Shown one piece after another: positions 4,748-19,783 of a stretch of 64,000 bases of DNA (position 1 is the stretch's first letter; each line of letters starts with the position of its first letter). The DNA lies in NCBI GenBank assembly GCA_977017575.1, contig CDRNVI010000139.1:62001-126000 (forward strand), given 5' to 3'. A program made the position numbers and the translations under genes. A model generated the notes under the pieces. The model searched no databases. It saw only the letters and a program-made list of their open reading frames with translations, and was not told the origin of the DNA. The DNA is from Paramoeba atlantica (lineage: Eukaryota; Protista; Discosea).

Positions 4748-4823
4748 AAAGAAGAAATCATAAAATTTGAACACAGATTTTGGGCATTTTCATTAATGTT
4801 TTGATCGATAAAAAAATTCTGAT

Positions 4824-6494
4824 TCACTCAAAGGTGATTTTAGAGACCTTTAAAAGCCATTCCCTCCACATCAAATCAAATTCTCTGATAGCTATTTCTT
4901 GAGTTTTTTGCTCTAACGCCTCCAATGAATTTTTTGCAAAGGTATAGAGATCTGCAAGACTCAATTCCCATTGACAAAAGACTACCATCCAATCATATGT
5001 GACGAGATCATATCCAAACATTCCTGGGTCATCAGAGGAAATGGTTAATTTGACCCCATGGCGATGGAGAGCTCGAGAAGGATGGACACGGAGATCAGCA
5101 ATGTAACCAAGAAGATGATTTGAGATTGGGCAACACTCAAGGATGGTGTTTGCTTTTTTGCACATCTGAATCAGAGTTGGGTGATGGATGAGAGCAAAAC
5201 CATGACCAATTCGAGGACACTCAAGGCTGAGTGCCGTATAAAGCTCATCATTAGCAGGCAATATCGATTCCCCTTTTGTTTTGTTCAGTTTCCAAAAATC
5301 ACAGAATCAAAAAAACACAAAAAAAAACAAATACCAGCATGCATGACATATTGAGCATCGATTTTCTTTTCTTTTGCTTCTTCAAGAACTCGATGAAGAT
5401 CCTTTGCATAATCGTGAAGAGGTCTCAAAGAATCTTCATGTCCAACAAGATCAAATCCATCCACATAATTGGGATAGTCTTGTTTAAGTTTGGCATAGAC
5501 TCCCGCCCACTCTCCAACCTTTTCTAAAAAAAGATATAAAGAAAAAGTTGAGAAATAAGACTAAAACAAGTCTCAAACCTGGAGTTTCAAATTTCAAACA
5601 ACAAAAAACAAGGCGAGCTCCAACAAATCCTGGATGTTCTTTCTTGAATAGATCCACAACTCTTGCAAACATTTTCATCAGATCATCTAATGAAACAATT
5701 TCCTGTTTCCCTTCTGGTGTATATTTTTTGTAAGGGAGAGACATAATTGTCTTCACCATGACAAAGATAACACCTTCTGAGAATTGAGCTTCAAGAAGTT
5801 TCCAGAGCAATCCTCCCCTCTCTCTCTCCTCTTCAGTTTTTGCGCTTTCTTTCCCACGAGAATGACCAAACCAAAAGTCAATGGAGTTGGCAATAGATTT
5901 TGCTCTTCCCCAGACATCATTGAAATCACTCCATGGGTATGGCGCGGTTGTTGGTCGTAAAGGAGAAGAATCTGGAATCGAGGTTGCCGAAGGGGGAGCA
6001 AGAATGAAAAAATCTCTCACATCACCCACAGGGAGTTCAGTGATCGGAACCCATCCTTCTTTTTCACAATTTCCTTCAACTCTGTATTCAATTGTTCCTC
6101 GAAGGACGACTTCTTCTTGGCCCCAAAGGTTGATGGTCTCTCTCTCATGGCCCATCCAAACACGAATAAGAGGGTCAGTGATCAAAGACTCATACCACAT
6201 CTCGAAAGAAGCCGCAGCAACTGAATGGATGTGGAGGTGAGCACCTTTTGGCATCTCTTTCAAAGTTTGGAAGAGTCGGCTTTCTTTCATCTTCACAAAG
6301 TTATCGAGCTTGAAGAGATGAGCATCAGACTCGATGGCATTGAGACGCAATCGTTTGAGAACCTCAAAAGCAGACGCTTCCAATTCTTTCTGGTCTGGGA
6401 GGTGCTCAGAAGAATGGTGAGAGACAAGTGTTCGATCTTCAAGCCTCAAAGCATCAATAGTTTCATGAATCTCACGCAAGCCAGCGACCGCCAT
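4824..6494 (-). CDS. Adenosine deaminase, ADA2/ADGF (CECR1)-like; 3 exons
   Basis: GAHLHIHS, GFDLVGHED (spliced exon 2), MHAG|ESI, RIGHG, ECCPISNHLLGYIADLRVHP, ISSDDPGMFG. All metal and catalytic residues are present. First ATG at 6494. Confidence 0.92.
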
Positions 6495-6747
6495 AACGCA
6501 CAAAACCACGCCGAACGAGCAAACGACAAAAAGAGAAAAGGTGAGAGGAGAAAAAGATGCGAAAAAGGAGAAAAAGGGATGAAAAAGGGGGTTAAATTGA
6601 AAAATATGGATAATTTTTTTCCAGACTAAAATTGGATGTAAATTTTTATTTCCATATTATTTGAATCTCTGTGTGAAAAGTCGAGGAGAGTTTTGTTTCT
6701 TTTTGTGTCTTTTGGTTTGTTGGTTTGTTTTTTTTGGGGTGGTGGGG

Positions 6748-9700
6748 ATGAATGGGATTTGGTCTTTGCTTCTATTTGTTCCTCCTTTGTATCTTTTGTT
6801 GGAGGGTCCTCGATATGGGGTTTCTCTCCCAACAGATCCTTTCTTCAGGTAAAGAGAAAGAAAGAGAAGAAGATTTTTGCAAAAAGGTCCTTTTCACAAG
6901 TTTTAACTCAAGATTTCTCAGTGAATGGGCAAATTGTGGGGTTCTCTTTTCAATCATTCGAATCTTGATCTCTGCTTTTGTCTTTTTTACGTTTGTTCTT
7001 TCTTATTTTTGCATTGTTGAATTTTGTGTCGTCTCACTCTCTCTTCTTTCCTTTTCAAGATTCTGGGGTTCTTGTCTTTTGATTCTTTCATATCGTCGTT
7101 TCTTTCTCCGACGATTATTTTATGCCTCTTTCCCTCAGGTTTGAAAACAAGAGGAAAACACAAATGAAAAAAAGAGATTCAATTCCTGAAGTAAACACTC
7201 TTTCATCCTTCTAGATTCTCTTAACCTTCTTTGGAGTAACTCTCTACACAATCCTCTTTTCCTTTTTCATTGCAACTGAACCAACTCAATCAAACCAAGG
7301 TTTCTTTTTCTCTCATTTTTATTTTGAATCAAAATTATGGAATCAAAGTATTGATGAGTTTGATTGATGAGTTTGATTGACAAGTTTGAATTGATAAGTT
7401 TGATTGACAGTGGCGAGAAAATGGAGTGAGTTGTTATTTTTGGCGGCTGTTTCTGGTCCATTTCACTGGACCATTTTTCTTCAATTTTATTTTTTTATCT
7501 TCCCAAAATACATCAAAGCGCAGCAACAGGTCTTTTCCAATTTCATTTCCTCATTCATGTAACTCATGATTTTTGAACCGTAGGTTCGATTCTGTGAAAA
7601 AGTTCGAATTGTTTACAGTGATTCCTCCAATGTTTTGAATTTCTTTTCTTTTTCTCATCTTTTTCTTTCAATTTTAAAATTGTAAAATTAAAGAAGAGAA
7701 TTTAGGAACCCAAAGTAGAAAATTGGTCTGGAACCCATTCTTCAGAAAATTCAAAACCCGCTTCTTCCCCATCACTTTCTCTTGCAAGGGTTCTTTTAAG
7801 CTTTTTTTCTTCTTTTTCTTCTTTCTTTTTACTTTTGTTTTAGGAACTGTCTCAAAATAAGATTTTTGATGGATATGATGTTCAGTTGACAACCATGAGG
7901 TTTTTAAAAGAAGAAAAAGAAGAGAAATTGGGGAAAACAAGATCACACTAAAATATTAAATAGAGAATTTTCTTCTCTGGGTTTGGTTGGGAGTGGTGGT
8001 GATACTCGAATCTTGGATGGAGAAGAGGGAGAAAATGGTATTTGTTTATTGCTCTTTATTCTTGATCAATCTCAGGCTGTCTTTGAGAACGGAGTCTGGT
8101 TCTTTTTTGCTTTATTTATTTATTTTTTGTTTTAATTTACTGAGATTGATTCGCAAGTCGTTGGTTACAAGGAGAAACGAACTCTCGAATATTTGAAGGT
8201 TCTTTTTCTTTTTCTTTTTCTTTCTTTAAAAACTCTTTTCATCTTTTTGTTCAAGGAACACATGTTGGATATGAAAAGAATATCGTTTACACAGCTGAAG
8301 GGCAGAGAAGAATTGATTTAAATCGGCTCAAATATTCGATATTTGGATTCAATAGCTCCCTTGCGCCTGTCTCTTTTTCATTTGAATCAAAATTACTTGA
8401 TGAAATTCTTGTTGATTTTTCTCTTTTGCAGAGTTCTCTAGCTGATGAAGGGACTTTTATTCATGACTGGTTGGATGATGTTGGTTTATTTTCATTGACA
8501 AGAGCCTTCCTTAGGTTTGCAATTTTGTTACAGGTGTTTCTTTCTTGATTAAAATATTTTATTGATTTTTTTTTCAGGGCTCGAGAGTGGCCGTCTCAGG
8601 AATCAGGTTTTGATCAAAATCACTTTTTTTGAAAAAAAAAAATCTCATCATTCAGTTCAAAGATCAATCTCGAAAGAGTCGGTTTACTGAATGGGTTGGT
8701 TTCCTTGAACAATCAATGAAAAAATTTGTTGTAAACCCCCGTTCACCAACCTCGCGTCCTCTATCAGAGAGTGACCCATATCTCATTGATGAAGTCTTGA
8801 CCTGGGCTCTGAGCCCTCCTGGATTAGGTTTCTTTATTTTCTTCTGTTGTATTTTTGCAAACCATCTTCTCATGTTTTTTATTATTTAGGACGGGAAGTT
8901 TTAAAGATCAGGTTTGAAGATGTTTGAAGGACCACTTCTTTCCAATGGTTGACTCAAACAAATCCTTGCCTTTTATTAGAAACCGACCTCATGAATTGGA
9001 TGTCCATTCATCCCATTTATTTCTCTTTGCTGTGTTTTCTTCATATCGGTTCTTTTTCTCTTCGATTTATTGTGATGACGAGTTCTTGTTTAAAATGACA
9101 ATAGATGGTTTTATCTCCGAACTCAAATTTCCAATTGGGGAGAATCTGTTTTCGGTTTTGTGTCACCAATTTTTAACCTACCTTTTATTCCAAAATTCTT
9201 TTTTTTCTTGTTGTTCGTTTTTACGGTGGCTGTAAATCTATTGGATGCAACTCAAATTATCTCGATTGACTTCCCAGAAACAATTGACTTCAACAATATT
9301 CCGTTGGGAATATTTTTTGCAATCCGAATCCTCTTTACCATTGGACTAACCTGGACATATGTGTTTTTAGTGGAGGTAATGTTTCATTCTTGTAACTCAA
9401 TGAAATCTTAAATTTAACGAAGTTTGTAGCTTAACATTCTAGGATATTTTTGTGATTCATGTCGAGCTGGTGTGCCACATGACCATTCCGATCCTAACTC
9501 TTCCTCTTCTGATATTGTAGAAGATGATGCTGAAGAGTTGCAAGATGACGGACCTTTGACAGATTTTGCGACGTTCTACCCGACCATTTCTCCTCTTCCT
9601 CCCTCCCTCTCTCCAAAGTACGAAGGCAAGTATGATTTGGAAATGGAAGGAGAGAAGGCATGGCCTACAAAGGGTGAAGTTGAGAGTGAATTGGACAAAC

Positions 9701-11138
9701 GATTTGTTAATAATACGTATGCTTATCAAATAAAACCAAGTTTAGGTTTCAGTCGATTTTACTCGCATGAAGTGGCTCTGAGGTTGTGGGATTATTTTTA
9801 TAGCTCTTTCGGAAAGAATCTGAACAACAAAATAGGGATTTTCGGGAAACAAGCGTTGCTTGGACGAGCGATCCAGCCACGGGTGCCATATATTTCTTTG
9901 GAAGTAGCATGCAAGATGGTCAAACTGAAGAAGAGCAAGAGGAGGAGAAAGAAAAGCTCTCAGTTTTTGAAGACGATCCCAGAGAGGTTGCGCGAAATGT
10001 GGACCTTGTTCTGAGTAAGTTGCAAAGTGGTAAACCCATTCCGTTGGAACTACGAAGCCTTCTCTCTTGGAAAGTGTGGCGGCGATTGCTTCAGGTTTTT
10101 TTTTTTGGATCAATTTCGTTAGAATTGTTGCTAATATTGTTATTCTTCCCATTTTTGTGGTAGACTCCAATTTTGTTATCTCCAAAATTAGAAGATCAAC
10201 TTCACAAAAGGTGGGATGATATTGTTCTTAATACTCAGAAAGAGATCCAAGAAAATGGGCTGATACTGATGCCTGATGACCTCTTTCCTCCTGTTATTAT
10301 TTCAGCACTCCAAGACGCATATTTTCGAGTTTTGGAAGAATATTCAGGTCCTTCCATCACTCCTTTTCTTTAATCCTTATTTTTTTTTGGTTTGTTATTG
10401 AGCGAATGAACAGGACCTGAAGGATTAACTCAACCCTTTGTGACATGGAATGAAGAACCAATTGGTCGTTACTTAAATCATCAAATGACTCCTTTTATGC
10501 GACGGATTGTTGGAGATAAAGTTTGGTTTCCTTTCTGACAATCTTTGAACAGTTTTATTGATTTGATTAAAAACAGATTCTACATCCTGGGTTAACTCTC
10601 GCAATTTGGAATGGCGGAAAAGGGTTCCCCTTTCACACAGGTTGAACCAATCTTCTTTTAAAATATTTTTTTTTTTGTTTTCATCAATTACGAGAGGAGT
10701 AACTTTTTACAACAGACACAATTCCCCCTTTTGATATTACCCTGGATATTATGGTTTTACATCAAGGTTTCTCTTGATTATTGTAATTTAAAATCATTTT
10801 TTTCTTGAACTTAATGTTGTAGGTCCACATTTGAGGCCAATTTATTTTCTTGTTCGTGACAAAAATCACCGAACAATTCCCAGAGTTGCAAAGGTTTTCT
10901 CTCTTTCTTTCTTGATGTTTTTCTGTGCCTCAGTTTAGCCATTGTCCAGGTTGAACTTGATAAACCAGGATCTTCTGCCCTTTTCATTGGATCACATCTT
11001 CCTCATTTTGGTGGTGATCTTCCCAAGTTTTTTTCTTTTCTTTCTATTCGCTTGCTCTTCTGTTTTTCTGAGTTTTTTGGGAAAAGGGGATGTACACAAG
11101 CCGTTCTTCTTTTGACTTGGTCTTTTGTGGAGGATTAA
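6748..11138 (+). CDS. Polytopic membrane protein with C-terminal 2OG-Fe(II) oxygenase-like domain, paralogue A (about 20 exons)
   Basis: Starts MNGIWSLLLFVPPLYLLLE, followed by several hydrophobic exons. Spliced C-terminus FPFHT|DTIPPFDITLDIMVLHQ|GPHLRPIYFL..|VELDKPGSSALFIGSHLPHFGGDLP|KGCTQAVLLLTWSFVED*. Collinear with paralogue B throughout. Confidence 0.75.
7351..7410 (+). repeat. 13-bp intronic minisatellite (TTGATGAGTTTGA, about 4.5 copies) ending at the 3' splice site
   Basis: Units start at 7351, 7364, 7377, 7391 and 7404; the last unit supplies TTGACAG| (acceptor). Confidence 0.85.
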
Positions 11139-11269
11139 TATTTTCAAACATGTTATTTGTGACATTTTTTGACAAAATCATATTTTCATGATGAGACAAC
11201 AAACTTTTGCACGTTTTACTCACAAGTAAAATCCAAATATTTCAGATATACATTTTTTGAGCAGAAAAA

Positions 11270-11667
11270 AACTTGTAGTCAGGGAGTGCCTGAATAAGAG
11301 CTGCCTTCCTTGTCAACCCTTTCATGTTTCTTTTTTGGCTCAGCACGAAGTTCTTTGACAGTCAGAGAATCCAGAAATCGTTCTTCAGGATCCTTCTCTC
11401 CCTCTAACTCTCCCCTTTTTTTTCTTAGGCAATGTTGCCTCAGAGACAAACTTGTTAGCCTCCTGAGTATGACCTCTTTTCTTGGGACATGAAGAAGAAA
11501 ACCTATTTTTAAATTGAGAAAAGAAAAAAAGACCAACGGCAAAGTTGAGTCTTTTCAGACCCTAAACCGCCATGACTTTTGCATGCACAGGTGAAAGAAG
11601 TCAACTCTGTTGGTGAAAAGGAAACTGAACACTCGAAAAGAAGCTTGTTGCGCTGTTGTCTCTTCAT
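11270..11667 (-). pseudogene. Short or degenerate gene with a frameshifted SAP/HeH-like motif and a possible degenerate SWIM-like Cys motif
   Basis: ATG 11667 MKRQQRNKLLFECSVSFSPTELTSFTCACK..LC, then a GT-AG intron, then ..LDSLTVKELRAE. A one-base shift in an A6 run (about 11331-11336) continues KRNMKGLTRKAALIQAL. Confidence 0.45.
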
Positions 11668-11760
11668 TTTAATAAAATCATCGAAATTTCAATGATGATT
11701 CGTTGAGAGAGCACAAAAATTTTTTCTCGTGATTTTTTTTGTTGTTTTGGTGAATTCTTT

Positions 11761-14700
11761 ATGTGGTGGGGTTGGGGTCTTCTTTTGATCCTTCCTCCTT
11801 TCTTCTTTCTTTTTGAGGTTTTGTTTTGTTTTTTTTTTATTATTGGAGATTTTTCTTTTTGGAGTGAGGGTTTTTTTTCAACTTTTTTTTTTGGAATTTA
11901 GGCTTCTTCTTTTGGTGTTTCTCTTCCTGTCGATCTCAGGTTTCAAGAAAGAAAAGAAAAAAGAGAAACAAAAAGAAAAAGAAACTGACTTTCGTCTCTC
12001 AGTGAATGGTCAAATGAAAATGGGATCTTTTACCTCTTTCGAATCTTTGTTATTCTCTTTATGATCTTCACGTTTCGTCTTTTTTTCTTCTCTATCTTTC
12101 TCTCTTTTGGGATCTTTTGTGTTGAGATTTCTCTCTTTTTTCTTTTAAAGGGTTGGAGACTCTTTGTTGATTTTGATTCAACATTACTTGAATCTACCAA
12201 GAAGAATGTTTTGTGAAACTCAAAAACAAACTTTTCTTTCAATCGGGATGCTGATTCTTTTTCTTCTTTTCGTTCTCTGTCTTGCTTTTACTGGTACAAC
12301 AACAACCCAAGAAGAAGAAACAGGTTCTTTTGTTTCCAGATTTTTTGTTTCTTTTTTTTTCTTCCAGAATTTGAGTTTCTTTTTTAGTTTCCCAAAAGAG
12401 TTGGAGCGGGATTATAACATTAGCTTTCTTGTCTGGGTTTTATCATTGGACCATTTTTCTTCAACTTTATTTCTTTCTTTATCCCCATTACATCAAAGCA
12501 CAACAACAGGTACGGAAAGAAAGAAAGAAAACTAATTTGGGAAAAAGAGAGAGAGAGAAAAGAAACTCACTTTAAAATGGTCAGGTCCGATTTTGTGAGA
12601 AAGTGCGAATTATCTACAATGATGCTCTTGACAACCCCCGCGTTTGCTTTCCTTCATTCGAAAAAAAACTTGTAAATTAGAATTCAATTTTAGTATATTT
12701 TCAAAAACATATCTTAACTATTTAATAAGGATTCTCATTCCAATCTTTTCAATTACAGTTGGAGAACGCTCCTCACTCTCACTCCACTGGAATATCACCT
12801 CACATCCCACAATGCAAATCCTTTGTCCTTGCTCAGGTAACCTTTCCATTTAAATCATCTTTATTGTTCTTTTTTAAAATTCGAAACAATTTAATAATAT
12901 TATGAGGGAAATAACAAAAAAATTATCATATGATTTATTCAATGAGTGATATTGGTAGGAACTTTCTCGGAATAAAATATTTGATGGTTATGAAGTTCAG
13001 TTAACTTCAATGAGGTAAAGACCAATGACAAAATTAATGTTTTCTTTTTTTCTTTCTCTTTTGATAATTCTTTATGTCAGAGATTTTAATCCAATGGGTC
13101 TGGTTGGGAGTGGTGGTGATACTCGTGTGTTGGATGGAGGGGATGACCAAAGCGGAATTTGTTTATTGCTTTTTGTTCTTGATCAATCTCAAGCTTCTTT
13201 TGAAAATGGAGTTTGGTTTGTTTTTTTGGACTGAATTTGTAGTGATCAATTATCTTAATTGGCTGAAAAATAGTCAGTGGCTCCAACATGAAACAAACTC
13301 AAGAATTAATGAAGGTTTCTTTCTTTTTTTGACATCTTAAGAAGAAATTTTAATCCTTATTCTGTAGGAAAGTACTTTGGTCATCGCGAGAATATCGTTT
13401 ATCTTCCAGCAGGGCATCGAAGAATCGATTTGGGACGTTTGAAATATTCTGTTTTTGGATTGAACAGTTCTTCTGCTCCAGTAATTCTTTCACTTTTATT
13501 CTCCTCCATTTCAAGGTTTTTTTTTCAGATTTGGGGTTAATTGGTATGACAGAGCTCGAGTTCAGATGAACCAATTTTTATCAATGATTGGCTTGATGAT
13601 ATTGGCCTCTTTTCGTTGACTCGAAATTCACCTGGGTTGGTTTTTTATGGATATCTTTCATGATTTGGATATTTATTTACTTTTATTTTCACATTTCCTC
13701 TGATAGATCTTTAAATTGGCCCTCTTTTGAATCTGGTATCTTTTGAAGCTCATTTTTTCTCATTCAATTGTATTTTCTGATTTCATCTTTTCCTTTCAGA
13801 CGAGGATCGCCAAGAGAGATTTGAGGAATGGGTTATTCTTCTTGAACAATCAATGAAATCACTTGTTTTAAATCCAAAAGCAACATGTTCTCTTCCTGAA
13901 AATGAGAGTGACCCTTATCTTTCTGGAGGAGGGGATTTTCTGTTTTGGATCACTGTTCCTCCCAATGATAAAGGTCTTCCTCTCTCTTGTTAAAAATTTT
14001 TAGTTTCAATTCTAAATTTTGGTTGAAAGGGAGGGAGACGGTCAAACTTCGGTTTTTTTTCAAATTTTTGGTGATATTTTTTCGATTTGTTGATTTTTTA
14101 ATCTTTGGGTTAGCAACCGACCACATGAGAAAGATGTTCATGGACATCATCTCCTCCTTTTTGCACTTTTTTCATCTTACAGGTAGAATCATCTTTTCTT
14201 TTCTTTGAATTCTGTTGCTTTCTCACTGCACATTTTTTCTTTTCAGGTGGTTTTATATTCGATATTTGTATTCAAGATGTCAAAGCCATTGCAATGACTT
14301 TGTTGGTCCAATAATCGGTCTCCCGAGACAGTTGATTTATTCCTTCCTTTTTTTTGTGATTGTGGTTCTTTTTATCAATGTACTTGATCATTTTGGGGTT
14401 ATATTCTTCCCGTTCGACAAGAGTGTTGTCCTCTTTGGGATTCCACTTGGTCTTCAGTTTGGTTTTCGGGTCTTTTTGAGTTTGCTTGTTCCGATCGTTT
14501 ATTCAATACTCGCTGAGGTTTCCAGAATTATATTTTTCTGAAAATAGAATTTATTCACAATTTAGTTTTAGTTGGAAGAGCAAGGATTTTTTTGCGAACA
14601 TTGTCAAGATCATTCCCATGAGCACGACCACGAATCTGAACCTGGAGAAAAGGCGGATCAAATTGACACACTTGCCCAAGATGCAACATTTTATCCAACC

Positions 14701-16274
14701 ATTGCGCCCCTTCCACTTTCTCTATCTCCTTATCGTGAAGGGAAATTAGATCTGGAGAAAGAAGGAGAACTTCTTTGGCCAAGTCAAGAGGATGTTGAGC
14801 AGGTCTTGAATGAGAGATATGTTAATTTGACATATTGTTATCAACCAAAGGCAAATGTTGGATTTAGTCGATTTTATACTCACGAAATTACTCTTCGGTA
14901 TCGTTTTCTTCCTTTCTTCCAAGTTTTTTTTATTGATTGTGGTTTAACTTTTTGAAAGGGACTTCCATGATAAGAGTTTGGGTTGGGTGAAAGATCCTGC
15001 AACTGAAGCAGTGTATTTTTTTGCTTCCTCTTTTTCTTCTCAATTGCCTGATGAAGGAAATGGAAAAGAAGAAGAGACAGACGAAGATATGACACGCAAT
15101 GTCGATTATGTGATGAGTAAGTTGGAACCAGGGAGGAAGATCTCTCCTGAACTCCGCCGTCTTCTTCCCTGGAAAATTTGGAGGAGATTTCTTCAGGTTT
15201 GTTTTTTTTTTTTGCCCCATTTTGGTTTTTTATTTGGTACAAATTAAAATTGAATTTTTATTTTATTCTTTTAGGCACCAATATTTACTTCTCTGGAGTT
15301 GGAGGACCAAATAAAAAATCGATGGGAACAAGTGGTTGTTGATGTGAAGAAAGGAATTAAAGAGAATGGGTTGATTATAATGCCAAATGATTTCTTTCCC
15401 CCAATTATTATTTCTGCTTTGCAAGACGCTTTTTTTCGTGTGCTTGATCGTTTTGGAGGTTATTTTTCGCTTTTATTCTATGGATGAAATTTACATTTCC
15501 GATCTTTAATTTGATTTTCAGGGATTAGTGGACTGGGAGCAGTCCAGACATGGAATGAAGAACCAATTGGACGATATTTGAACCACCAATTAACACCATT
15601 TATGAGAAAAATATCAGGAGAACAGGTTTATTTCTCCCCCTCAATGACTTTTTTAAGTCACAAAATGGAAAGTAAAAATTTTATATTTCACTTTAGATAT
15701 TGCATCCTGGTTTGTCACTTGCAATTTGGAATGGTCCTGGGGAAGGATTTATTTTTCATACGGGTATTTATTTTTTGTTTTGTTTTGTTTATTAAAGACT
15801 TTTTACTCTCCATTTATCTTGTTTCTCGCAGATACAATCCCTCCATTTGATATTACTTTGGATATTATGGTTTTTAATCAAGGTTTCTCTTTTTTGTTCC
15901 TTCTAAAAATGCGTTTCATGAAAGAAAGAGCTTTAACTGAATTTTCTCTTCAGGTCCGGTGGTTAGGCCGATTCATTTCCTTGTTCGTGATAAATCAAAT
16001 CGTCTCATTCCACGAGTTGAAAAGGTTTGGTTTTGTGTTTATTTGTTTTGTCTCCAATATTTTAATTGATTTTTTGAATAGATTGAGCTTCATAAACCGG
16101 GTTCTTCTGCATTATTTATTGGTTCTCATCTTCCCCACTTTGGTGGTGATCTTCCTGAGTATTTTTATTCTTTCTTTTTCTTTTTTATCAATTTTTTTTT
16201 ATTAAATATTTCTTGTTAAAAGGGGGTGTACACAAGCAGTTCTGCTCTTAACATGGTCTTTTTTAAAAGATTAA
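11761..16274 (+). CDS. Polytopic membrane protein with C-terminal 2OG-Fe(II) oxygenase-like domain, paralogue B
   Basis: Starts MWWGWGLLLILPPFFFLFE|ASSFGVSLPVDLS|EW. C-terminus FIFHT|DTIPPFDITLDIMVFNQ|GPVVRPIHFL..|IELHKPGSSALFIGSHLPHFGGDLP|EGCTQAVLLLTWSFLKD*. Confidence 0.75.
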
Positions 16275-16305
16275 AGAGAACCTTGAAAACAGAATATTAA
16301 TTGTT

Positions 16306-17534
16306 TCAAGAATTTTTTACAAATCGCAACCCCCCTCCTTCAGACTCTTCGACTCTCTTTAAGGTATAAGAACCATCTCGTACTAATTCTATAAACTCTT
16401 GTTTGGAATGTTTGTCCTTCACTTTTACAAAAATTGCCTCCACCCCTTTTGCTGAAACTTCAACTTTGTCACTGTATTGTAATATTTTTTTGTCATAAGG
16501 AATCAAACGGATGTGGTCATGTTGATTGTATGTTTTGATTGTTACTTCTGGTGTTGCATAATTTGTGATGAGAACACTCCTCTTGACCTATGAATATATA
16601 AATATTTGTTCAACTTTCGTAGGTGTTGAGGAGAGAAAGGAAAGGGAAAAAAAGAAGAACCTTTACTTTTTTCTCGTCAGAAACCGGGAGATCTTCAGAC
16701 ATGAGTTGGACAAGATTCTCTGTTCGAGCTGTGGCAACGATTGAAGGAATTTCCTCCTCAAAGAGAGTTTTTATTCCTCTAAAATTTTAGTGAATATTGA
16801 TATTTTCTTTCGAAAGGAAAGGGGAAAAAAAGAGAGGAAACCTGCCCGTTAACGCGCTCACTTCAACATATTTACATCCGATTCTGTTGGCAACTTCTTG
16901 AGCTTCTTCTAAACTCACAAGTTCTTCTTGCTTCGAAAATGAGAATGAGTGGTGCTCTTCTTCTCCTTCTGGTCGATCTCTTTTGTCGGCATGTGATCCA
17001 ACAAGAAGAAAAAGACAATCTCTTTTTTCGAGAGATTTGTTGATCTCTGGAAGCCAAAAAGACTCGATTCGAGAGAGAGTTTTCTTCTTTTCGATCGAAA
17101 AACACAACAAGATAATTTCACTGGTTCGAATGTGCCCTTTTTTGAATTTAATGAGCAAAAGAAAAGGAAGGAAGAAAAGAGGAAAGAAGAAAAGAGGGAA
17201 AAGAAAACCTTTGCTCAGAATCGAACCGACGTTGGTTTGGAGATGAAGACGGAATGGCTCCCATTGTTTTGATTGTGGGATTGAAATTGGATTATATTCT
17301 GCTGTGATTTTTCTCTCTGGTAAACTCTTTCTGTTTCAGAATCAGGTTTTCAGGTCTGAAAAAAGGAAGACAGAAAGAAAAAAAAAAGGAGAAGAGAAAA
17401 AACCGAAAGTACTGATGAAGGAGGGAAGCTTTCCCCACAGAAACATCGCCGATTATAAAACAATGACAATCTTTTGTCAAACTAGATGTTGAATTTGACT
17501 TCATGACATGAAATTCATCCACTTCATCCGCCAT
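16306..17534 (-). CDS. Atypical Ras-superfamily small GTPase (probable pseudo-GTPase) with a C-terminal extra domain
   Basis: IIGDVSVGKASLL (G1), FRLHLQTNVGS (G3 position), IILLCFSI..SRIESFWLPEI, LLVGSHAD (G4), ANRIGCKYVEVSALTG (G5). About 90 extra residues end ..LRFVKNS*; no CAAX. Confidence 0.8.
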
Positions 17535-17821: not shown

Positions 17822-19783
17822 ATGAAGAGAGTCGTGGTTGTTGGGGGTGGATTGAGTGGGTTAAGATCGGCGGATCTTCTTTTGAAAGAGAAGAAGAAGA
17901 AGAACCAATCTTGTCAAGTTGTTGTGTTGGAGGCCATGGATCGAGTTGGTGGTCGTCTTTACGGAGTGGATTATAAACACCAAAGGAATGGGAAAGAGGA
18001 AGTTGTTCGTTTGGATTTGGGAGGGCAGTGGATTGGGCCTCCTCAACAGTATGTTTCGGAATTGGTTGAGGAACTTGGGATTCGGTGTGTTGATCAGTTT
18101 GATCAAGGAAAAGGAATTCTTCAGGTATTTTTTTTTTTTTGATGTTTTTTTTTTGATGAAAATTCAAGTTGAAGAATTTTTTGGTTTTTCTTTTTAAAAC
18201 CTGACCTGAAAAAACAAAAAAAAGTTGACTGGGAAACAATTTGAATTTTCTGGAAACATTGGGACACTCGATATTTTTGGAAAGGAAGGCCTTTTGGAGA
18301 AAGTTTGGGATCGCTTGGATAAATTGGCCTTCTCAGTTCCAATTGAAGATCCTTATCTCTCTCCTAATGCTGCAGAATGGGACAATCAAGTTCTTTGTTT
18401 TTCTCTCTCTTTTTGATTCAGTAGAATCATGAATTGAATTTTATTTATGTTTTTAGTCTCTTTCTGATTGGTTGGAGAAAAACGTGAAAAGTGAAGGAGA
18501 TGGGGGGTCTTCTGCAAAACAAGTCAAAAATCTGATCTCATGGTTTTCTATTGTTTGTCTTTGTGTCGAAACTGCTCACACTTCATTCTTGTACTTTTTA
18601 TGGTGGCTTCACACTGGTTCACAATCTCCTTCTCTTACTTCCTTCAAACAAAACTCATCTCCAAAATTTTGGGATTTTTTTTAAATTCTTGAAAAAAAAA
18701 AAGGTGGGGGTTATCAACCTTTAGTGAATATCAAACAAGGAGCACAACATTACTGGATCCCCAAATCTGCCCACCATATTTCAGGTTTTTGTCTCTTTTT
18801 TTTTGTCTTCTCCATGGTTTTTCTCTTTTCTTGTTAACAATTGCTCCCTTTTTTTAGAACTCTTGGCAAAGAGGGTCGTGGAAAATGGTGGGAAGGTTCT
18901 CTTGAACTCACAAGTTGTTCATGTGAAGCAGGATTTGGAGAATAAGAAGACAGAAGTCACGTACATGGATCGCACAACTGGATCTTATTCTACTCTCTCT
19001 TGTGATAAAGTTATTATGAGTACTCCTCCTGCAATCACAACCCAAGTTTTTCTCTTTCTCTTTTCAATTTTTTTGCTGAATGAACTTATCAAAAGGACAG
19101 ATCTCTTTTACTCCCCCGCTCTCTTCCACACGTGTTGGGATGTATCAACGAATGCCAATGGGTTGTGTCATTAAATTCGTTCTGGTTTTCAAGTTAGAAA
19201 TTCTTATTCATTCCTTCCTTTCATCAAATAGGCACTAAATTTTCTGAATAGGAATCCATGGTGGCGCGAGAGTGGCTATAGTGGAACCTACATCTCTGAT
19301 ACCGGACCAATTGGTGTCATGTATGACAAGAGTCTTGATGAAGAGGGATTTTACAGTCTCGTTGGGTTCTTCACTGCCAACACAGCACGGTATTGGAGTG
19401 ATAAATCAGAGCAGGAGAGAAATGAAACCATTTTGAATCACATGGAGAGGATCTACAACTCCAAGAAAGTAAGATCGGAGTTAGTGACAATCCTCTTGCA
19501 TGATTGGACAACAGAACAATTCACAAGAGGTTGTTTTATGTGTATTCCAGCACCCGGTAAGCTTTCTTTCTTTCCAAATATGATGGAATATTTCTGATGT
19601 CTCTTGATAGGGGGATTACAAGGAGGGATGAAACATTTCCGCGATCCATTCCATAATGTCCATTTTGTTGGAACAGAGACAGGAAATGTCTGGATTGGTT
19701 ACATGGATGGAGCACTTGAATCAGCTTCTCGAGTTGTAGAAGAGTTGACCGGAGTTTCCTATCGTCCAACAGCAAAATTATAG
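17822..19783 (+). CDS. Flavin-containing amine oxidase (monoamine oxidase-like), multi-exon
   Basis: VVVVGGGLSGL, VLEAMDRVGGR, DLGGQWIGPPQ, DWTTEQFTRG, HFVGTET..GYMDGALESASR; ends ..PTAKL* (TAG 19781-19783). Confidence 0.93.

Follow-up and report, generated by a model that had tools for sequence, protein, structure and literature searches.

Tandem genes of the amoeba Paramoeba atlantica encode multi-pass membrane proteins with a conserved, putatively oxygenase-like tail

In a 64,000-nucleotide stretch of the Paramoeba atlantica genome (contig CDRNVI010000139.1 of assembly GCA_977017575.1, positions 62,001 to 126,000 of the forward strand; hereafter the window), a first-pass annotation had proposed a tandem pair of membrane proteins fused to a domain resembling 2-oxoglutarate (2OG)- and Fe(II)-dependent oxygenases. 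The abundance of introns in the pair agrees better with nuclear DNA of the amoeba than with its endosymbiont. We demonstrate that this architecture is real: two related genes on the + strand, gene 1 at 6748-11138 and gene 2 at 11761-16274, are both expressed, both copies are under selection, and the membrane part and the C-terminal tail are joined on one spliced transcript. However, the second half of the proposal, that the tail adopts the double-stranded beta-helix (DSBH) fold of 2OG-Fe(II) oxygenases, is not established. The oxygenase reading of the tail is the best available and fits everything that was seen; it is plausible but unproven, and membership of the tail in any particular oxygenase family is not supported at significance. 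Taken as a whole, the best explanation of each gene is a membrane-tethered metalloenzyme-like protein, a proposal that stands about evenly balanced in our judgement.

The exon models of both genes were built manually from tblastx blocks, GT-AG rules and reading frames, and were checked by script. Comparison of 6600-11400 with 11400-16400 by tblastx yielded about 25 collinear conserved blocks on the + strand, and both genes lie where the first-pass annotation had placed them, from the start ATG at 6748 to the gene 2 stop at 16272-16274. Evidence for splicing comes from the spliced contigs of run X1, a sequencing run of the same organism that appears to be RNA. Twelve introns are seen in these contigs as GT..AG joints, ten of them in gene 2 (13216-16081) and two in gene 1 (10520|10577 and 10640|10716). 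One spliced contig of 1195 nucleotides (nt), spanning 14398-16117 on the + strand, starts in the last membrane-helix exon of gene 2 (14398-14517) and runs through six more exons into the exon with the distal His. Because this single contig joins their exons, the last membrane block and the tail are on one transcript, and the suspicion that the two parts might be separate transcripts, which had been named as a reason to give up the fusion, is thereby removed for gene 2. The RNA also bears out the claim that the His-Thr-Asp motif of the candidate domain is split by an intron. In gene 1 the codons of His867-Thr868-Asp869 extend over 10634-10717 (+ strand) and the Asp codon is divided as G|AC by the intron 10641-10715; the RNA joint, 10636|10712 with a 4-base ambiguity, corresponds to 10640|10716 with GT..AG ends. 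In gene 2 (residues 847-849, 15760-15833, + strand) the Asp codon is divided as G|AT by the 68-nt intron 15764-15831, the removal of which is required by the length arithmetic of the 1195-nt contig.

The two proteins are 56% identical overall, with pronounced differences between regions. Identity and nonsynonymous substitutions per site (dN) are 43% and 0.51 for the N-terminal membrane block, 63% and 0.30 for the middle soluble region, 36% and 0.72 for the second membrane block, 51% and 0.45 for the linker, and 73% and 0.19 for the last 201 residues, where synonymous substitutions per site (dS) exceed 2. The earlier observation that the C-terminus is more conserved than the membrane parts is thus reproduced with 73% in the last 201 residues versus 43% and 36% in the two membrane blocks. 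Synonymous sites are saturated between the copies (dS above 1.6 in all regions), and the dN/dS ratio amounts to about 0.08 in the tail and, wherever else dS can still be estimated, to about 0.2-0.3. As judged from these rates, both copies are shown to be under purifying selection that is strongest on the tail. The introns of the two copies can no longer be aligned outside the conserved exon blocks, which together with the synonymous saturation indicates that the duplication is old. The 622-nt spacer between the genes (11139-11760) has no similarity to the flanks of the other copy.

The candidate Fe(II)/2OG-oxygenase domain comprises residues 751-951 of gene 1 and is spread over seven exons (10164-11138, + strand). 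Members of the superfamily bind the metal by a His-x-Asp/Glu...His facial triad, in which some 50-150 residues lie between the first motif and the distal His. The corresponding residues are invariant between the copies, namely H867-T-D869 with H925/H928 in gene 1 and H847-T-D849 with H905/H908 in gene 2, and the His-to-His spacing of 58-61 residues falls into this range and is typical of prolyl 4-hydroxylases (P4H) and AlkB. Both candidates for the distal His, His925 and His928, are part of the S-H-L-P-H segment at gene 1 residues 924-928 and are encoded by the exon 10950-11026 (+ strand), which contains KPGSSALFIGSHLPHFGGDLP and the first two bases of the Lys935 codon and is 92% identical between the copies. 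The resemblance to DSBH oxygenases extends beyond the ligands: W-N-G-x-G-F-x-F-H-T-D and K-P-G-S-S-A-L-F-I-G-S-H-L-P-H-F-G-G are invariant in both copies, and these two motif blocks around the ligand His are the best-conserved stretches of the whole protein. A crude propensity scan and inspection by eye suggest that the last 100 residues are rich in beta structure, with about eight beta-prone segments. H-T-D would stand at the end of segment 2 and the His of S-H-L-P-H on segment 7, which fits strands II and VII of the fold.

Two comparisons with known oxygenases point in the same direction. In the Atlas language-model feature search with exon 10164-10346, which opens the domain upstream of its core, 53 of 100 named matches were PhyH and 15 of 100 Gig2-like; 70-73 features were shared, but at 0.85 the score does not reach the reliable range of the tool, and this is a lead only. 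For a comparison of profiles, a 2OG-FeII_Oxy_3 profile was assembled from Escherichia coli YbiX with three close YbiX homologues, eight plasmid PiuC homologues (37-58% identity) and 12 cyanophage proteins. The three homologues come from a word-indexed search with E. coli YbiX, whose matches were all YbiX of at least 80% identity and offered too little depth for a useful profile on their own. When the profile was compared with the two spliced tails by hhalign, the best alignment, at chance level, was one collinear stretch of 105 columns (score 17.6), in which H-T-D falls on H-x-D, His928 on the distal His of the YbiX-type enzymes and the following Gly on Gly.

The regions preceding the candidate domain give the proteins their unusual layout. 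All helix calls, and the topology with them, are taken from hydropathy scans. Residues 1-168 of gene 1 (6748-7529, + strand) contain a signal-like hydrophobic N-terminus and about four membrane helices, which lie at residues ~40-166 with an Arg-rich loop after helix 2. The signal-like segment was recognized correctly in the first reading, whereas its count of about three membrane segments in this block was too low. A middle soluble region of about 270 residues follows (residues ~169-435, 7584-8979, + strand), which carries GLVGSGGDTR, ICLLLF.LDQSQA.FENG and a conserved N-S-S sequon; a Pfam search of its exon pieces gave no match. The second block (residues ~436-549, 8980-9375, + strand) opens with the His-rich, weakly hydrophobic DVHxxHL...SSYRWFY segment and continues with two strong helices at residues 481-499 and 521-545. 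The His-rich motif is conserved between the copies although its block is merely 36% identical. Its spacing, compared by eye only, did not fit the motifs of PAP2, CREST/PAQR, GT2 or fatty-acid hydroxylases, and these assignments were dropped. Altogether, the two blocks on either side of the soluble region contain at least six segments of strong hydrophobicity. All motifs that had been quoted from the first reading (GLVGSGGDTR, DVHxxHL...SSYRWFY, FHTD and KPGSSALFIGSHLPH) are present in both copies.

The exon after the last helix (9430-9782, + strand) begins the tail of about 400 residues with C-x-x-C at gene 1 residues 554-557 and H-D-H at residues 563-565, followed by an acidic stretch, FYPT..PLP..SLSP, N-x-T and GFSRFY(S/T)HE. 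The juxtamembrane C-x-x-C and H-D-H as well as N-x-T are common to both paralogs (9430-9782 and 14572-14897) and to P0003, the metagenomic fragment described below. C-x-x-C and H-D-H could form a second metal site, or N-x-T could be a glycosylation site that is informative on topology. The positive-inside rule, applied with two helices in the second block, tentatively suggests that both soluble parts are cytosolic and that the protein has a seven-span, receptor-like body whose very short N-terminus is outside. If the second block had three helices, the tail would instead be outside.

The gene 1 model starts with the ATG at 6748 and has 25 exons and 951 codons in an intact open reading frame (ORF). 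Exons 1-9 lie at 6748-6848, 6922-7138, 7215-7299, 7411-7529, 7584-7631, 7706-7789, 7844-7899, 7964-8098 and 8158-8198; exons 10-17 at 8256-8368, 8432-8514, 8578-8606, 8663-8827, 8890-8911, 8980-9048, 9105-9375 and 9430-9782; and exons 18-25 at 9836-10094, 10164-10347, 10414-10520, 10577-10640, 10716-10766, 10823-10893, 10950-11026 and 11087-11138, all on the + strand. The gene 2 model contains 26 exons and 931 codons, likewise on the + strand, with exons 1-9 at 11761-11817, 11902-11939, 12003-12118, 12159-12323, 12388-12509, 12585-12641, 12759-12836, 12959-13014 and 13081-13215; exons 10-18 at 13274-13314, 13368-13480, 13553-13635, 13707-13735, 13800-13973, 14030-14051, 14114-14182, 14247-14517 and 14572-14897; and exons 19-26 at 14959-15196, 15275-15458, 15522-15625, 15697-15763, 15832-15882, 15954-16024, 16082-16158 and 16223-16274. 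Exons 7706-7789 and 12759-12836 are additional to those listed in the first-pass annotation. The gene 1 introns are all GT-AG, measure 53-111 nt and match those of gene 2 in position; the last one (11027-11086) was inferred solely by comparison of the two copies. From exon 7844 of gene 1 and exon 12959 of gene 2 onwards the exon phases are identical and the exon lengths nearly so. Over both genes the introns measure 53-122 nt, except for one doubtful 40-nt intron in gene 2, and cluster at 53-78 nt. Their donors are mostly GTTT or GTAT and not GTAAGT. This holds for every RNA-confirmed intron, and the donor and length pattern at 6748-16274 may help gene modelling in this genome.

The doubtful intron belongs to a problem spot at 12119-12158 (+ strand), where, inside helix 2, gene 2 passes from frame +1 to frame +2 when compared with gene 1. 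The gene 2 model bridges this change by the 40-nt GT..AG intron, the ends of which are atypical; otherwise the spot is readable only with a 1-nt frameshift near 12150, and a downstream start codon is a further alternative. At 12119-12158 no difference was seen between the window and the DNA contigs of run X3, and an assembly error is therefore unlikely. The RNA run has zero depth over the spacer 11139-11760 and over 11793-12389, where the first four exons of gene 2 lie, so that the 5' exons of gene 2 are model only. Hence, gene 2 may be partly damaged or differently started, whereas its remaining ~880 codons are open, spliced and expressed. An explanation that we take seriously while leaning against it is that gene 1 is the only fully functional copy and that gene 2, through a frameshift near 12150 or a downstream ATG that would leave out the first helices, has a damaged or different 5' end and is maybe decaying in some strains. 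An intron shorter than all others here and the missing RNA depth would agree with this, as would the Glu that gene 2 has at the co-substrate position where gene 1 has Lys. After 15138, in exon 14959-15196, the only contig of the DNA-like run X4 that crosses the site has four additional nucleotides (GATC), which duplicate the adjoining sequence in tandem and would put gene 2 out of frame, whereas runs X1-X3 agree with the window; decay in some strains would account for such an insertion. However, from exon 5 on gene 2 is intact, spliced and expressed, and without selection 900 codons would not have stayed open over a divergence that has saturated the synonymous sites.

The alternatives that concern the tail itself depend on how the comparisons with known oxygenases are weighed, and several results count against an oxygenase. 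The hhalign alignment to 2OG-FeII_Oxy_3 has P=0.059, and 15 of 200 column-shuffled queries score as high; hmmsearch with the same profile gave -0.6 bits, within the shuffles; and pairwise z-scores of the tail against oxygenases remain below 1. Pfam searches of 19 exon translations (21-117 residues, E limits of 1 and 10) returned neither an oxygenase family nor any other convincing one, although a blank from such short pieces is a weak one, and a sequence search of the PDB with the exon alignments A2 and A4 returned chance matches only (a pyrophosphatase and a Mg transporter). The Atlas score of 0.85 lies under the level that the tool counts as reliable. In 2OG oxygenases an Arg or Lys about 8-12 residues after the distal His is expected to bind the C5 carboxylate of the co-substrate. 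At this position gene 1 has Lys935 (+10 from His925, +7 from His928) and gene 2 has Glu915, and in the hhalign register both copies have Thr opposite the 2OG-binding Arg of YbiX. With nine His in the 201-residue domain, a bare H-x-D...H does not go beyond chance. Finally, the topology comes from hydropathy alone and the DSBH fold of the tail is conjectural. Some further matches have no bearing on the question: two sub-threshold Pfam matches in exon pieces (PF07418 and PF03810) are evidently spurious, a Ralstonia FAD oxidoreductase found by tblastn of exon 10164-10346 against plasmids is a chance match, and Atlas feature searches with exons 9106-9375 and 9430-9780 were uninformative with scores of at most 0.76.

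If the tail were an orphan fold rather than an oxygenase, such as a domain that serves binding or regulation in a lineage-specific transporter or receptor, with H-x-D...H a coincidence, chance-level scores in all sequence tests against known oxygenases, blank Pfam and PDB searches of the exon pieces, the variable basic residue and the abundance of His, which weakens the motif on its own, would all be expected. We consider this somewhat unlikely, given that the motifs around both His, in their full extent, recall DSBH oxygenases and are the best conserved in the protein, that the ligands are in register in the best profile alignment, and that the Atlas lead goes to PhyH and Gig2 and not to an unrelated fold. 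Distinctly improbable, in our view, is a metal-binding DSBH or cupin that makes no use of 2OG, be it a 2OG-independent oxidase or a pseudo-enzyme sensing oxygen, metal or a metabolite for the membrane part: the ligand-like triad is the same in both copies, whereas the canonical Arg/Lys of the last strand is absent or differs between them (K935 versus E915; Thr in the hhalign register), and the second Cys/His cluster (CxxC...HDH) by the membrane is shared with the sole foreign relative, but loss of the basic residue is not decisive, since several true 2OG oxygenases of the JmjC/FIH type hold the co-substrate by residues of other strands.

For the membrane-tethered metalloenzyme that we prefer, the parts could work together as follows. 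A signal-like segment with about four helices, the soluble region of about 270 residues and another two or three helices would lead into the C-terminal tail of about 400 residues, the last ~200 of which would form the DSBH. His867, Asp869 and His928 (or His925) of gene 1 would bind Fe(II), and a protein side chain or a lipid close to the membrane would be hydroxylated with O2 and probably 2OG. Tentatively, the body would be seven-span and receptor-like with the catalytic tail inside the cell. A bolder version appears improbable to us: an undescribed class of eukaryotic multi-pass, possibly seven-span and receptor-like proteins, whose cytosolic Fe(II) dioxygenase tail is coupled to the membrane body by a juxtamembrane CxxC...HDH metal site and which would act as a sensor-enzyme for oxygen, a metabolite or a metal. 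Such a class would occur only in paramoebid amoebae and a small number of uncultured protists.

Relatives of the two proteins are exceedingly rare. A profile search with exon 9430-9780, exhaustive over 1.84 billion representatives, returned three proteins, two of which (P0001 and P0002) are ORF fragments of the same locus from an ENA contig 99.3-99.5% identical to the window. The sole foreign relative is P0003/P0124, an exon fragment (E 8e-6) whose contig of 6.5 kb belongs to JGI metagenome 3300059473 (second accession GCA_041447075.1). P0003 retains CxxC, HDH, FYP, NxT and RFYSHE and has the same exon end, and it therefore represents a relative in another intron-bearing eukaryote. Exon 9430-9782 is the only part of the protein for which a foreign relative was found. 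Word-indexed searches with exon alignment A2 and with P0124 gave self matches only. Pattern scans were blank in metagenome contigs (two scans, in one of which, with the amoeba exon placed first, the known metagenome relative itself failed tblastn confirmation) and in viral contigs (three scans). Of two scans of bacterial and archaeal genomes the first was blank and the second gave one match, which is due to chance: HLPHFGGD at L004:3001-3060, in a metagenome-assembled genome of Thermoguttaceae, is read off-frame on the opposite strand of a GC-rich CCA-adding-enzyme-like gene and is a false positive even though tblastn accepted it. The exon-piece and profile searches that we ran gave no known family with this architecture, and no third copy of the pair was found within the window. 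As far as sequence comparison can tell, the proteins are an orphan family with next to no counterparts in public databases, and provided that the fold holds their architecture is new.

The same ENA assembly provides information on the surroundings of the pair. Contig ctg3979l of ERZ24900291, from the same species, is 99.3-99.5% identical to positions 1-24956 of the window, with about 30 small insertions or deletions (indels) per 20 kb. Some of them hit exons or splice sites of gene 1 (7044-7052, net +1; 9835, -1) and would break its frame. Their appearance suggests that a long-read assembly erred at homopolymers or microsatellites; real strain differences are the alternative. The upstream neighbour on the - strand (~4820-6509) is an adenosine-deaminase-like gene, which includes the 341-residue ORF at 5484-6509; on the matching ENA contig an ORF has a PF00962 entry. 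Downstream, at ~17860-18200 and ~22230 (+ and - strands), ORFs of this contig have amine-oxidase/NAD-binding (PF01593, PF13450) and F-box (PF00646) matches. These are ordinary neighbours and have no evident link to the pair.

In its block order the tail matches the PKHD-type/PiuC enzymes (E. coli YbiX) and the cyanophage 2OG-FeII_Oxy_3 proteins (PF13640). In both cases an N-terminal beta-alpha start comes first, and the shared blocks (Y/W)-x-x-G-x-x-(Y/F)-x-F-H-x-D, a beta-strand pair and P-x-G-x-x-x-(L/F)-(F/Y)...H-x(7)-G...W follow in the one register found by hhalign. However, the similarity is at chance level (P=0.06), the 2OG Arg aligns with Thr, the amoeba tail is without PKHD_C and those enzymes are without a membrane part. 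PhyH (PF05721) and Gig2-like/DUF1479 (PF07350) enzymes, the nearest clusters for exon 10164-10346 by language-model features (score 0.85), are soluble, unlike the amoeba pair. The membrane-bound LpxO of Salmonella, an Fe(II)/2OG enzyme of the Asp/Asn beta-hydroxylase type that hydroxylates lipid A, sets a precedent in function for a 2OG oxygenase embedded in the membrane and acting on a membrane lipid; it is bacterial, has a different anchor and is likened to the pair by function, not by sequence. If the seven-span topology with the N-terminus outside is right, the proteins would also recall RpkA of Dictyostelium, a G-protein-coupled receptor (GPCR) fused to a phosphatidylinositol phosphate kinase and thus a seven-transmembrane receptor-enzyme fusion of amoebae, in having a multi-pass receptor-like body and a cytosolic enzyme tail. 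Unlike RpkA, they have no detectable GPCR similarity, an insert of about 270 residues between spans and another enzyme type.

Even if the tail is not an oxygenase, the pair represents an expressed and selected family of about 940 residues with essentially no relatives among 1.8 billion cluster representatives, as judged by a one-exon profile, and makes paramoebid amoebae stand out as a reservoir of membrane biology yet to be explored. Close parallels in overall design are P4H-TM, the plant type-II prolyl 4-hydroxylases, ASPH and OGFOD3, enzymes of the secretory pathway which have one N-terminal anchor helix and a luminal catalytic domain of a known family. With these the pair would share a membrane-tethered oxygenase-like domain and H-x-D...H at similar spacing. 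It differs in its two multi-helix blocks, its large soluble insert and a C-terminal candidate domain whose exon pieces have no Pfam match; by hydropathy this domain lies at the far C-terminus, and not directly behind a single signal-anchor as in the P4H-TM, ASPH and OGFOD3 type. To our knowledge, all known membrane-bound 2OG oxygenases are held by a single anchor helix. If the fold does not hold, the two genes define a family of orphan membrane proteins. Should the tail be a true DSBH, they encode a polytopic instead of a single-anchor membrane-bound Fe/2OG oxygenase, whose multi-pass body and large extra domain would be a new way of placing 2OG chemistry at the membrane and would suggest hydroxylation of lipids or membrane proteins, or oxygen or metabolite sensing wired to a membrane protein.

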